DNA from: Octopus sinensis
Lineage: Eukaryota
Reading direction: 5' to 3'
DNA: 64,000 nt
Assembly: GCF_006345805.1 (NCBI RefSeq)
Contig: NC_043010.1
Coordinates: 31,558,001-31,622,000 of the forward strand
In this document: positions 10,730-63,744 of the stretch, piece after piece
Layout: the number at the start of each line of letters is the position of its first letter
How positions within the stretch are numbered: position 1 is the stretch's first letter
The notes under the pieces: generated by a model
What the model saw: only the letters and a program-made list of their open reading frames with translations
Databases searched by the model: none
Told to the model about the DNA's origin: nothing
Position numbers and translations under genes: made by a program

Positions 10730-10908
10730 AAATACATACATACATGCATACATACATACATACATACATACATACATACATACATAAATACATACATACA
10801 TACATACATACATACATACATACATACATACATACATACATGCATACATACATACATACATACATACTACATACATACATACACATACATACATACATGC
10901 ATACATAC
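10730..10908 (-). repeat. (GTAT)n tail of RTE-A copy 1
   Basis: Plus-strand (ATAC)n array directly abutting the RTE-A 3' end at 10909. Confidence 0.95.
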
Positions 10909-11515
10909 ATTATGGCTGCCCCCTCGTTATCGAGTATGGCCATTGCACGAAGCTTAACTGTTACTGGTGCTGTGATCAAATGTGACTTTTAGCCCAGTAT
11001 TGTACAAAATTGGCAACTAAACCTTTACTGGTAATAGCCGGCTGTAGTTGTAACTGGACTTCATGTACCTTTGCATGTCGTTTAAGTCCTCCTGCCGAAT
11101 TACACTCTCTTCCACATGCCCGACAGATATGATTAGTATGGTGTGTTACACCACCACCAGTGGCCAGGTTGTCACTCATCTGCCTCGTTTTATGACTACG
11201 AAGATGACTCTTGAGTCCAGCTTTACTGAGGCAGGGTCTTGCACAGACATTGCATGTCAGCATCAAAGGAAGACCCTTCCCTTCTGGATGTGTAACAGCG
11301 ATGCCCTTCCCGACATCCCCCCCTTACTTTCTCATGTGCAACTCAAGATTTCTCAAACGTGGCTGTCCCTCATGCACAATCCTTCTCCACCTGCTACGAT
11401 GAATAGCTATGCCTTCCCATGTGTCAGGAGAGATGCAAGCATCTCTTAAGGAAGCCTTTAGCAAGTCCTTATACCTCTTTTTTGGTTTATGTGGAGGTCG
11501 TTCTCCACATAAACC
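10909..11515 (-). mobile_element. RTE-clade LINE 3' fragment, family RTE-A, copy 1
   Basis: GERPPHKPKKRYKDLLKASLRDACISPDTWEGIAIHRSRWRRIVHEG resembles the C-terminus of the neighbouring RTE ORF; C2H2 fingers CNVCARPCLSKAGLKSHLRSH and CRACGRECNSAGGLKRHAKVH; 3' end gcaatggccatactcgataacgagggggcagccataat + (GTAT)n. Confidence 0.9.
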
Positions 11516-11763
11516 ATACATACATACATACATACATACATACATACATGCATGCATACATACATACATACATACATACATACATGCATGCATACATACA
11601 TACATACATACATACATACATACATACATACATACATACATACATACATACATACATACATACATACATACATACATACATACATACATACATACATGCA
11701 TACATACATAAATACATATATACATACATACATACATACATACATACATACATGCATACATAC

Positions 11764-12369
11764 ATTATGGCTGCCCCCTCGTTATCGAGTATGGCCATTG
11801 CACGAAGCTTAACTGTTACTGGTGCTGTGATCAAATGTGACTTTTAGCCCAGTATTGTACAAAATTGGCAACTAAACCTTTACTGGTAATAGCCGGCTGT
11901 AGTTGTAACTGGACTTCATGTACCTTTGCATGTCGTTTAAGTCCTCCTGCCGAATTACACTCTCTTCCACATGCCCGACAGATATGATTAGTATGGTGTG
12001 TTACACCACCACCAGTGGCCAGGTTGTCACTCATCTGCCTCGTTTTATGACTACGAAGATGACTCTTGAGTCCAGCTTTACTGAGGCAGGGTCTTGCACA
12101 GACATTGCATGTCAGCATCAAAGGAAGACCCTTCCCTTCTGGATGTGTAACAGCGATGCCCTTCCCGACATCCCCCCTTACTTTCTCATGTGCAACTCAA
12201 GATTTCTCAAACGTGGCTGTCCCTCATGCACAATCCTTCTCCACCTGCTACGATGAATAGCTATGCCTTCCCATGTGTCAGGAGAGATGCAAGCATCTCT
12301 TAAGGAAGCCTTTAGCAAGTCCTTATACCTCTTTTTTGGTTTATGTGGAGGTCGTTCTCCACATAAACC
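11764..12369 (-). mobile_element. RTE-A 3' fragment, copy 2 (855-bp period with copy 1)
   Basis: Apparently identical to copy 1 except for one C in a C-run; (ATAC)n on both sides (11516-11763, 12370-12635). Confidence 0.9.
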
Positions 12370-12635
12370 ATACATACATACATACATACATACATACATA
12401 CATGCATGCATACATACATACATACATACATACATACATGCATGCATACATACATACATACATACATGCATACATACATACATACATACATACATACATA
12501 CATACATACATACATACATACATGCATACATACATACATACATGCATACATACATACATACATACATACATACATACATACATACATACATACATACATA
12601 CATACATGCATACGTACGTACATACATACATACAC

Positions 12636-60700: not shown

Positions 60701-60795
60701 TTATTATTATTATTATTATTATTATTATTATTATTATTATTATTATTATTATTATTATTATTATTATTAACATTATTATTATCATTATTATTATT

Positions 60796-62722
60796 CAGTA
60801 GTTTTATTTTTATAGCGTGCTTTCACTTCACTACCGAGCACAGCTCTGTGTGCCTTGGGTATGTGCTGTGATTTGTTGTGATGCTCTGATGGTTATTGTA
60901 TGGAAAGTGTTCTGCGTAGGATGTGTGCAGTGCCTAGTAGTGCAATTTTCTGTATGTTATATGTGTTTGTAAGTCCTGGTGTTTTTGTTATGTATTTGTC
61001 TGAATATTTTTTTATCATGCCTAATGCACCTACTATGATAGGAATTGTTTCTGTTTTCAGATTCCACATTCTAGTTACCTCTATTTCCAGGTCTTTGTAT
61101 TTTGAGAGTTTCTCCATTTCTTTTAGAGACACGTTGTCATCAGCCGGTATTGATACATCAATTAGAAAGCATTTTTTTTCTTCATGATCTCTGACAACTA
61201 TATCTGGTCTGTTGGCCTTAATTTCTCTATCTGGTGTGTATCGGCATATCCCAGAGTATGGTTGCTTTCTCGTTTTCTGTGACCTTTTCTGGTGTGTGCC
61301 TATACCATCTTTTTTCTGTTGTTATTCCATAATGTTGGCATAACTTCCAATGTATGTAGGTTCCAACTCTGTCATGTCTGTGAATATATTCCTTCTTAGC
61401 CAAGACTGGGCAGCTAGAGATAATATGATTTATTGTTTCTTGTCCATCTCCACATATTCTGCAGTTACTTGTAATATTCTTTTCATTACATGTTTTTGGT
61501 AATTTCTGGTGGGGAGGCTTTGGTCTTGTGCTGCAATTAAAAATCTCTCTGTTTCTGCTTTGAGTCCTGAGCTTCTCAACCATTGCTGGGATTTTTCTTT
61601 GTCTATTTCTTTTGCGTTTAGTTTAGTCCAGTATTTACCATGAAGGGGCTTTTCTTGCCATCGTTTTATCATGGTTCGTTGCTGTTCTATTTTTAGTTTG
61701 GATTTCATTTGTTTTATAGCTTTTGTTGTTTCTTCATCTTCTTCTTCTTCATGTTTATTAGGTGGTATGATTTCTTGTTTGTATTTGTCAGCTTCCTTAA
61801 ATACTGAGAACAGTTTTTTGTTTTGCTCGTGTTTTGCCGCTATCTGGATCAGTTTTCCTTCCTTCTGAAGTAGATATTTTTGCAGTCCTATGGTGGTTAT
61901 TTTATAGTAGTTTTCCAGCTGTATAGGCCTCTACCACCTTCTATACGTTGTATATATAGTCTTTCTATGTCAGATTTTGGGTGATGCATCCTAGATCCTG
62001 TCATTATTTTTCTTGTTTTCCTATCTATTTTGGTCAGTTCATTTCGTGTCCAGTTAAGGATATTGTAGCTGTAACTTATAACTGGGACAGCTAAAGTGTT
62101 GATACCTATTATCTTGTTTTTAGCATTGAGCTCTGTGTTTAGTATTGATCTAACTCGTCTATAATATTCTTTTTTTATTTTCTCTTTCATTTGTGTGTGT
62201 TGTGTCTTATCTAGTTCATGGATTCCTAAGTATTTGTAAGTTTGGCTTTGGTCTAATTCTTTTATGTCATTGGTTTTATCTAGTGTGATGTTGTTACTCT
62301 TAACTAGTTTTCCTCTTTTCAGGGTTACTTTGGCGCATTTTTCTAATCCAAATTTCATATCTATTTCTTTGGTAAATCCATGAACTGTCTTTAATAGTGT
62401 TTCCAGCTGTTTGTCATTTGCAGCGTATAGTTTTAGGTCATCCATATATAAAAGGTGGCTGATCGTTTTGCCGTAACATTTATATCCGCATCCAGTTCTA
62501 TTTAGCATATCAGATAGAGGTGACAGTGCCAAGCAGAAAAGGAGTGGAGAGAGCGTGTCTCCCTGGAATATTCCTCTTCTAATGGGGATGTCTTTGGTTT
62601 TCATGAGTCCCTCTTTTGTTTGGAGGTGTAGGACTGTTTGCCATTTATTCATAGAGTGCTCTATGAATTTTATGATTGTTGGTGCTACTTTGTTAATGGC
62701 TAGTGTTTCGAGGATCCATGTA
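60796..62722 (-). mobile_element. 5'-truncated R4/Dong-like LINE (RT-CCHC-RLE) between (TAA)n arrays
   Basis: GIFQGDTLSPLLF, HLLYMDDLKLY, YKYLG, CRICGDGQETINHIISSC, ANRPDIVV..CFLID; about three frameshifts; (ATT)n at 60701-60795 and 62723-62793. Confidence 0.95.
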
Positions 62723-62793
62723 TCATTATCATTATTATTATTATTATTATTATTATTATTATTATTATTATTATTATTATTATTATTATTATT

Positions 62794-63275
62794 GAGTGAG
62801 TGAGTGAGAGAGCTGCGCATGCCATCGAAGTGATACTGGCGTGAAATTATACGAAGCCCAATATACCCATCATGACTACCCGTTTGATAAGGGTACATCG
62901 GGCACATGCATTACGACCACATGTGCGCGGCGTGGTAAACTTATATAAAGATAAACAGCGCATAACCTTGCACGCAGGGCTCAGTTAGAATTATTTTTTT
63001 CAGGTTGAGTAGCATATCCCGCTCAAAAAAAAAAAATTCCCTGAATAAAGTTTGTTTAAGGAAGATGAACGAAACATCTATGTTTCTAGAGGTGAATTAT
63101 TCAAACCTCAAAGAATTCTACATGGCTATGATGCTCCCCTACTATCTCTGCTCGTGATCAGAGATGCACATATCGTCAACCACCTAGGGGCATGCTCAAA
63201 TGGTTATGGTCAAACGACTGACAAGCAAATTTGTGGTATTGAGCAGAATATTTGCTACAGCCCATCTTTTATATT
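62794..63275 (-). mobile_element. About 480-bp non-coding element bounded by (TAA)n on both sides
   Basis: 3' end ...gcagctctctcactcactcactc + (AAT)n; 5' end follows (AAT)n at 63276-63350; second copy at 58024-58330; no tRNA head or ORF recognised. Confidence 0.7.
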
Positions 63276-63744
63276 TATTATTATTATTATTATTATTATT
63301 ATTATTATTATTATTATTATTATTATTATTATTATCATTATTATTATTATCGAACGTGGTTGGTGTTCTTTAAAGAGTTGCTGATGATTCATACTTTTCC
63401 CTCAATGGTAGTAGTAGAAAACAAGAGATAACGAGAAAGTAGCTCGCAGAACAAATGTCAAATGTATTGTACTGAAATGTCCGCCAAAGCAACGAGAAAC
63501 AAATATTAATTAAACGTCAATGTCATGTGTGACCTAAAATGGCCAAAGGTGCTGCGAAGGTCAAGGCAATCCCCACTGATTTTATGATACTTATACATCT
63601 GGAATAATCTTTTGACAGAACGGTAGGAGTTGAGTTCTAACATCCGAAAGTGAGTCCCAATTTACTAATATATATATATATATATATATATATATATATA
63701 ATATATATATATATATATATATATTATATATATATATATATATA

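Follow-up and report, generated by a model that had tools for sequence, protein, structure and literature searches.

A 64-kb stretch of the Octopus sinensis genome (contig NC_043010.1, positions 31,558,001 to 31,622,000; hereafter the window, whose own numbering is used throughout) carries three clusters in which retrotransposons that lack long terminal repeats (non-LTR), or long interspersed nuclear elements (LINEs), stand among microsatellite arrays. Three reverse transcriptase (RT) lineages are detected with the Pfam domain RVT_1, at 12676-14871 (minus strand), 27775-29820 (plus) and 61897-62907 (minus), and protein cross-matches between them are just ~22-30% identical. We refer to these lineages as RTE, Tx1-like and Dong-like. 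An earlier note on this DNA had paired them with (GTAT)n, (TATC)n and (TAA)n, respectively, and at intact 3' ends the pairing holds throughout the window. In the table of junctions, the cognate motif stands behind every one of the 12 LINE copies whose 3' end is intact: (TGTA)n for the RTE copies A1, B, A2 and A3 (4/4), (TATC)n for the Tx1-like copies T1, T3, T4b and T5 (4/4, with 2 units only at T3), and (AAT)n, equivalent to (TAA)n, for the Dong-like copies D1, Df, D2 and D3 (4/4). Orientation is uniform within each stack, minus for RTE, plus for Tx1-like and minus for Dong-like elements.

The association extends to 5' ends. Cognate arrays flank three of the six Tx1-like 5' ends (T2, T4a and T5) and three of the four Dong-like ones, so that for these two lineages the association in the window goes beyond 3' tails; an association confined to such tails was what the earlier note had named as refuting its proposal. 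Microsatellites make up 10.6% of the window, and their bases are divided among the ACAT class (24%), the AT class (18%), the AC class (17%), the AAT class (13%) and the AGAT class (8%), among others. The AT and AC classes, jointly 35%, show no linkage to LINEs, and none of the 12 intact-end copies adjoins one of the abundant (AT)n or (AC)n arrays. The suggestion that such elements account for much of the microsatellite load of the genome is not borne out: summed from array and junction coordinates, LINE-abutting arrays amount to ~1984 of 6755 bp, or ~29% of the microsatellite bases, even in this LINE-rich window.

The RTE zone

On the minus strand, from the 5' to the 3' side, the RTE zone (10662-15494) consists of (GTAT)8, A1, (TGTA)43, B, (TGTA)66, A2, (TGTA)62, A3 and (TGTA)63, the last of which grades into degenerate GT-rich sequence. 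The longest copy, B (12635-14665), is a 5'-truncated element of 2 kb encoding the RT and a C-terminal C2H2 finger. Its open reading frame (ORF), the RTE ORF of the window, comprises 731 aa and has 84% protein identity to P0001, a full-length 1065-aa homologue containing both an apurinic/apyrimidinic endonuclease (APE) and an RT. The 3' untranslated region (UTR) of B measures ~50 bp from the stop codon to (TGTA)n, and the copy ends in ...GAAGGACGAACATTATTG. A1 (14839-15459), A2 (11766-12368) and A3 (10911-11514), each 600 bp long, belong to a second RTE-like family, of which they represent 3' fragments. They have three C-terminal C2H2 fingers and a terminus different from that of B (...GGGGGCAGCCGTAA in A1), and all three start at one and the same nucleotide. 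The array on the 5' side of A1, (GTAT)8 (15460-15494), has no upstream RTE whose tail it could be. (TGTA)43 (14666-14838) forms the tail of A1 and at the same time flanks B on the 5' side, (TGTA)66 (12369-12634) lies between B and A2, and (TGTA)62 (11515-11765) and (TGTA)63 (10662-10910) form the tails of A2 and A3.

A2 and A3, together with their arrays, represent an 854-bp array-plus-fragment unit repeated with 97% identity over 1105 bp. Both carry an internal deletion that is absent from A1, and in the final ~85 bp of the arrays 5' of A2 and 5' of A3 the TGCA interruptions follow one identical pattern. Given the high identity, the common deletion and the identical interruptions, A2 and A3 are a tandem duplication at the DNA level and not separate insertions. 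The array downstream of B is homologous to that 5' of A3, and therefore B sits in an array older than itself, making it one clear independent insertion into a pre-existing (TGTA)n array. The RTE stack is accordingly mostly the product of unequal-crossover duplication of the 854-bp unit, with B as a separate copy inside the array, and four independent RTE insertions are not supported, since the four copies reduce to one duplication and one or two insertions. Directly ahead of (TGTA)n, B reads ...ACATTATTG, a junction with the look of a (TTA)-type tail of which a remnant has been fused to the pre-existing array.

The Tx1-like zone

On the plus strand, between 21431 and 30971, the order is T1, (TATC)30, T2, T3, (TATC)2, T4a, T4b, (ATCT)10, T5 and (TATC)16(TGTC)11(TATC)16. 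T5 (24915-30798) is apparently full length at 5.9 kb and contains an ORF1 with a zf-CCHC zinc knuckle and an ORF2 with Exo_endo_phos (APE), RVT_1 and zf-RVT domains; since the three pieces of ORF2 lie in one frame, its interruption is due to two in-frame stops. T1 (21431-22300), a 3' fragment 87-91% identical to T5, has unique sequence at its 5' flank and is followed by (TATC)30 (22301-22420), which serves as its tail and as the 5' flank of T2. The latter (22421-22778) is a 3' fragment without a tail of its own that abuts T3 (22779-24129), a copy with an internal deletion, ~78% identity to T5 and the conserved terminus GTGGCCAATAAAGAAA ahead of its two TATC units. T4a (24139-24450) likewise meets T4b (24451-24874; terminus GCAGCTAATAAAGAAAC) with no repeat spacer, and (ATCT)10 (24875-24914) follows T4b as its tail and borders the 5' end of T5, whose own composite tail spans 30799-30971.

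A terminus, GCCCTGTGTGGCCAATAAAGAAA, is common to T1, T3, T4b and T5 and immediately precedes the repeat in each. The shorter copies begin at T5 coordinates 29804, 30212, 28876 and 29431, and the copies share 78-91% DNA identity with T5 or with one another. From these varied truncation points and this level of divergence it follows that the Tx1-like copies are independent, 5'-truncated insertions. A further, diverged Tx1-like copy outside the zone, T7 (41510-43313, minus), has no cognate repeat. It breaks off within the RT at a (CCT)9(CTT)22 array, and short inverted duplications surround it in the region 41510-44360 (41736-41825 with 43731-43820, and 43614-43703 with 44220-44309). Within the apparent 5' UTR of T5 lies a (CAC)58 array (25287-25461). 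The composite layout (TATC)n(TGTC)n(TATC)n of the T5 tail recurs in a free array at 38765-38967, which might be what remains, as a tail alone, of a Tx1-like insertion.

The Dong-like zone

The Dong-like zone spans 53337-63350, with its elements mostly on the minus strand. Its upper part reads, on the minus strand, (AAT)25, repeat X, (AAT)24, D1, (AAT)32, a SINE-like piece (resembling a short interspersed nuclear element), a short AAT run, Df and (AAT)35; ~1.6 kb that include the plus-strand fragment T6 then lead to (GAA)46, D2, (AAT)17, D3, (AAT)29 and a foldback element. D1 (60796-62720) encodes the C-terminal half of the RT, a CCHC motif and a restriction-like endonuclease (RLE) with RPDIVV, IDVS and KYK motifs. 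It is bounded 5' by (AAT)24 (62721-62793), which is preceded by repeat X and not by a Dong-like copy, and 3' by its tail, (AAT)32 (60700-60795). Df (60339-60499) is a 3' fragment 85% identical to the 3' end of D2. D2 itself (56813-58447) is interrupted by a fragment of repeat X and has (GAA)46 (58448-58587) as its 5' flank; (AAT)17 (56760-56812) is its tail and also the 5' flank of D3 (55954-56759), a 5'-truncated copy of a different subfamily with (AAT)29 (55866-55953) as its tail. D1, D2 and D3 can be aligned with one another only as protein and are therefore separate insertions of different subfamilies.

The array at 60233-60338 is shared between two elements. Read on the minus strand it is (AAT)35, the tail of Df; read on the plus strand it is (ATT)35, into which T6 (59243-60232) runs. 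T6 is a diverged Tx1-like C-terminal fragment with its 3' region. We considered it as a clean in-window case of a LINE joined to the repeat of another clade; that case is weakened by its terminus, which is too diverged to count as intact and cannot be aligned with the conserved GTGGCCAATAAAGAAA. D4 (53337-53740 with its array, plus) comprises a 148-bp, 3'-truncated internal Dong-like fragment (53337-53484, 89% identical to D1) followed by (TAA)87 with (TGA) variants. Its genomic orientation is opposite to that of the stack, and its element-to-repeat polarity is the same. An RLE-like fragment next to T7, D5 (44321-45332, minus), lacks (TAA)n or another cognate repeat.

Repeat X, which is unclassified and ~480 bp long (62794-63274), lies between two TAA/TTA arrays, and a 307-bp piece of it (73% identical, 58024-58330) stands in place of ~41 codons of D2. 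Repeat X could be a non-autonomous element using the same arrays.

Across the three zones, then, the head-to-tail arrangement in one orientation that had been described is uniform within each stack, with D4 lying opposite to the Dong-like stack. Spacing by each element's own repeat fails at T2/T3 and T4a/T4b, which have no spacer, at the 5' end of T1, which lacks (TATC)n, at D2 with its (GAA)46, and where unrelated elements (repeat X, SINE-like pieces, the foldback element and T6) intervene in the Dong-like zone.

Assignment to clades

Homologues of B at 60-84% identity are 1037-1070 aa long and contain Exo_endo_phos and RVT_1 in a single long APE+RT ORF, of which the 5'-truncated B preserves only part. 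RTE elements are characterized by a very short 3' UTR that runs into a short tandem repeat, as is found in B. The assignment is made by analogy with the octopus element RTE-2_OV, which carries endonuclease, RT and C2H2 domains, has a microsatellite after its ORF, and has been placed in RTE phylogenetically (PMC9115989). We also considered the R1-clade family Waldo for these ACAT-associated elements, and their domain order, ORF length and 3' end led us to reject it.

The closest solved relative of T5 is human L1 ORF2p (4e-43 over ~500 aa, versus 3e-19 for R2), and T5 has the layout of Tx1-type elements, namely an ORF1 together with an ORF2 in which APE and RT are joined by a cysteine-rich domain at the C-terminus. 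Its RT finds its closest named relatives in the cephalopods Argonauta hians and Acanthosepion pharaonis. Repeat annotation of Octopus vulgaris lists RTE, Dong-R4, CR1 and L1-Tx1 as active LINE groups, with L1-Tx1 as the sole active class of the L1 group (PMC13282606). Kojima's criterion for target specificity asks for the same sequence in >20% of flanks; the Tx1-like copies have (TATC)n at 3/6 5' flanks and 4/4 intact 3' ends, but all of these come from one locus, and the Argonauta copy does not lie in an array.

D1 contains the motifs CRICG...H...C, RPDIVV, IDVS and KYK, placing a CCHC motif and an RLE after the RT. Among solved structures in the PDB, its relative P0259 (58% identical) matched only R2 proteins; the CCHC, PD, D and K motifs of P0259 are collinear with the zinc-knuckle and endonuclease region of R2, the C-terminal part alone giving a weak match (E = 0.05). 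The N-terminus is missing here, and the lack of an APE is accordingly presumed. Dong is defined by insertion into sense-strand (TAA)n, and here all four intact 3' ends and three of four 5' flanks are (AAT)n. The same 5' junction is seen in L017, one of the Tara metagenome scaffolds L017-L019, in which a 5'-truncated Dong-like copy lies directly behind (TAA)27 with no array 3'. Some HERO families likewise target microsatellites (PMC4640811).

Relatives in other genomes

The pairing of one clade with one motif was followed into relatives of the window elements, leaving out three contigs (L004, L007 and L008) that stop before the 3' end of the element. A Tx1-like relative, L005, with 76% protein identity to T5, keeps the conserved terminus GTGGCCAATAAAAGAAATC and terminates in (ATT)n, which is complementary to the repeat of Dong; with so similar an element ending in (ATT)n, the motif of Tx1-like elements evidently changes between close lineages. 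Among RTE relatives the terminus is GGACGAACA, and the repeat behind it is (ACA)n, (TCA)n, (TTA)n, (TA)n or (TGTA)n. Eight contigs encode an identical RTE protein, P0069 (65% identical to B), and there the same GGACGAACA is followed by (TTA)4, (TA)n or TTA(TGTA)n. The 3' ends of closer RTE relatives consist of (ACA)n, or of (TCA)4 inside a (GTAGGT)n minisatellite. These observations do not support the strict three-way partition that had been proposed: a Tx1-like element can bear (ATT)n, copies of one RTE bear three different motifs, and other relatives bear (ACA)n, (TCA)4 or none. The RTE preference probably arises from tail-to-target microhomology with AT-rich repeats and not from strict motif specificity.

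The scans also returned negative results. Tx1-like C-termini gave no match in two metagenome scans (one with a single protein, one with an alignment), RTE gave no match in a scan of viral contigs, and the element termini had no true match in the Octopus vulgaris transcriptome supplement. In the MELT variant file for RTE insertions in O. bimaculoides, which concern a different family, target-site duplications are mostly null, and among the few that were resolved (AT)n or ATAC-like strings are frequent, which is suggestive only.

Protein relatives of the RTE (P0001-P0120) at 60-84% identity occur in the tapeworm Spirometra, the fishes Oryzias, the frog Leptobrachium, the gastropod Nucella and many marine metagenomes. 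As such conservation lies far above what host divergence allows, these protein comparisons suggest repeated horizontal transfer of the lineage.

Probable insertion into arrays and its alternatives

We consider it fairly probable that the window holds three compound loci formed by non-LTR retrotransposons that integrated, by target-primed reverse transcription, into microsatellites matching their own 3' tails. In the model that we infer, a nick would be made on the strand complementary to the tail repeat of the element, that is in (TACA)n, (GATA)n or (TTA)n, and the RNA would anneal at the nick through its 3'-terminal repeat, which would prime cDNA synthesis, with tail annealing or endonuclease specificity setting the site. 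The new copy would enter in a fixed orientation, splitting the old array, and would add its own tail repeat on its 3' side, extending the array and providing the target for the next copy. Repeated rounds would yield head-to-tail stacks of 5'-truncated copies.

The 12 cognate 3' ends are by themselves expected if the tail belongs to the element, and the argument for targeting comes from the 5' side. D1, Df and A1 have a cognate array at the 5' end that does not belong, as a tail, to a cognate copy upstream, and divergent, independent Tx1-like and Dong-like copies start exactly at cognate arrays. With (TATC)n covering 0.8% and (AAT)n 1.4% of the window, the probability that three independent 5' ends land on each motif by chance is of the order of 1e-6. 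The junction anatomy and the divergence of the copies, like the A2/A3 duplication, are directly observed, and this anatomy shows insertion into arrays to be the best reading for the L1/Tx1-like elements in (TATC)n and for the RLE-bearing Dong-like elements in (TAA)n, because duplication cannot give stacks of different subfamilies and template jumping predicts complete 5' ends. On the latter ground we dismissed template jumping as an explanation of the stacks, the downstream copies here being truncated at varied points. For RTE, array insertion is reasonable but thinly supported. The earlier proposal that LINEs target and extend their own repeat is consequently strengthened for the Tx1-like and Dong-like elements, with their divergent copies, varied truncations and 5' cognate arrays, and is weaker for RTE.

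Several observations weigh against this account. It draws on a single 64-kb window with few independent insertion events, and, because A2 and A3 are duplicates, the case for RTE targeting comes down to B and the short 5' array of A1. T1, T3 and T4b lack a cognate 5' flank, and that of D2 is (GAA)n. Arrays of all three motifs also stand free, with no cognate LINE adjoining: (TGTA)90 (32459-32818), (ACAT)20 (33465-33546), (TATG)27 (38410-38520) and (GTAT)13 (40750-40801) for the RTE motif, (ATCT)50 (38765-38967) for the Tx1-like motif, and (TAA)16 (8153-8202) and (ATT)12 (51030-51065) for the Dong-like motif. Outside Octopus sinensis, a Tx1-like relative in Argonauta has a single TCTA unit after its terminus and no array, one RTE relative lies inside another LINE without any tail repeat, and others lie inside an unrelated minisatellite. 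The names RTE, Tx1-like and Dong-like, finally, are putative, being taken from domains, homologues and 3' ends.

The best-surviving alternative, which we regard as unlikely, is that tails alone are responsible: LINEs ending in microsatellites would insert anywhere, and the stacks would grow by unequal crossing-over, replication slippage or ectopic recombination between arrays. The RTE zone illustrates such growth, A2 and A3 with their arrays being a clear tandem duplication. A comparable case is found in another genome, where two contigs (L001, 9960-11780, and L006, 9960-11790; ENA ERZ26692694) carry one and the same 5'-truncated RTE copy, with identical truncation point and junctions, inside a (GTAGGT)n minisatellite; here too a fragment of a LINE has been amplified along with a tandem repeat. 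Microsatellite tails are, moreover, general in the RTE clade and carry no implication of targeting (PMC2887409). However, the Tx1-like and Dong-like stacks join different subfamilies with different truncation points, ectopic exchange would not preserve strict head-to-tail polarity, and the 5' arrays of D1, Df, A1 and L017 are not tails of an upstream copy.

It is less probable still that the elements accumulated passively in a repeat-rich, low-recombination "graveyard", where adjacency would reflect density and not specificity. [quoted passage not shown] Yet in 12 of 12 cases the junction is exact, with the terminus followed by the cognate motif on the correct strand, and none of these copies adjoins (AT)n or (AC)n, abundant as these arrays are among the microsatellite bases. 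An assembly artefact, in which collapsed or mis-joined reads mimic stacks, is very improbable: short-read metagenome contigs of related RTEs are visibly chimeric (L009 and L011 have the same 5' flank and different 3' tails), but the stacked copies vary in both sequence and length, and their arrays have individual interruption patterns.

Relation to known repeat-targeting elements

Integration into arrays that match the tail, as favoured here, has ample precedent, and the behaviour in the window is mostly known repeat targeting rather than a new system. The earlier note took only the link between Dong and (TAA)n as established; Tx1 microsatellite families, RTE-generated microsatellites and tail-guided RTE integration have also been published (PMC4494074, PMC3812793, PMC2887409, PMC6007223). 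Dong inserts into (TAA)n in several hosts including the snail Biomphalaria, and Kibi, Koshi, Mino and Waldo are associated with (TC)n, (TTC)n, (AC)n and (ACAY)n, respectively (PMC3812793). In crocodilians, Tx1 families show a preference for (TTCC)n and (TTTC)n (PMC4494074). Families of microsatellites are generated by RTE elements (PMC2887409), and RTE is not on the list of target-specific clades (PMC4640811). Nishiyama and Ohshima have proposed that RTE tails guide the integration site and that a change of tail repeat may switch it (PMC6007223). As the principles for Dong, Tx1 and RTE had already been published, the three-clade synthesis combines known principles.

The Dong-like copies resemble Bombyx Dong, DongAg and the snail element DongBg in having an RT followed by a CCHC motif and an RLE, a sense (TAA)n end and copies within (TAA)n arrays, and a mollusc member was already known (PMC3812793). 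They differ in that all are 5'-truncated and one has (GAA)n at its 5' side; their placement in R4, rather than in HERO or another RLE clade, is putative. The Tx1-like elements share with Kibi, Koshi and the crocodilian Tx1 families the organization of APE-type L1/Tx1 LINEs (ORF1, APE, RT and a C-terminal zinc domain) and the single-orientation stacks inside one microsatellite. They differ in their motif, (TATC)n, which was not found reported for this clade. The RTE copies agree with octopus RTE-2_OV, with lepidopteran RTEs and with the Nishiyama-Ohshima model in their single APE+RT ORF, terminal C2H2 finger, very short 3' UTR leading into a microsatellite, and tail motif that varies between copies and hosts. 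The window differs in its long arrays (170-270 bp) and in the copy inside a pre-existing array. Waldo shares with them the double-stranded class ACAT/ATGT; in length, domain order and 3' end the window elements are RTE-like.

What is possibly new is a (TATC)n-specific Tx1-like lineage and the insertion of an RTE into an array. Only tentatively, and as a rather unlikely extension, do we suggest that several octopod LINE clades may be strand-specific specialists for different arrays, including a lineage of RTE, which is not known as a target-specific clade, and a (TATC)n-specific Tx1-like lineage, that their tails would feed array growth, and that the stacks would make up a sizeable share of tetra- and trinucleotide repeats. 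If true genome-wide, this would add (TATC)n to the target repertoire of Tx1, provide a natural case for testing how tail repeats steer RTE integration, and help to explain the richness of cephalopods in certain tetra- and trinucleotide repeats. For the present, the main meaning is that repeat targeting by LINEs, as known from textbooks, is at work in this genome, and that markers based on microsatellites with these motifs will often be multi-copy.

Other elements in the window

The remaining elements of the window are of diverse kinds. SINE-like copies derived from tRNA occur at 667-862, 38540-38680, 60530-60699 and 63746-63880; they are 80-84% mutually identical and often adjoin microsatellites. 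Four pairs of inverted repeats resembling foldback elements or miniature inverted-repeat transposable elements, with arms 82-88% identical, are located at 63-288/477-702, 2373-2557/2664-2836, 15886-16066/16161-16332 and 55167-55382/55588-55795. A Ty3/gypsy-like pol fragment (33550-34400) directly follows the free (ACAT)20 array. A short interstitial telomere-like (CCCTAA)n tract is present at 2570-2633, and a 99-bp unit at 50614-50812 is repeated as two tandem copies that are 86% identical.

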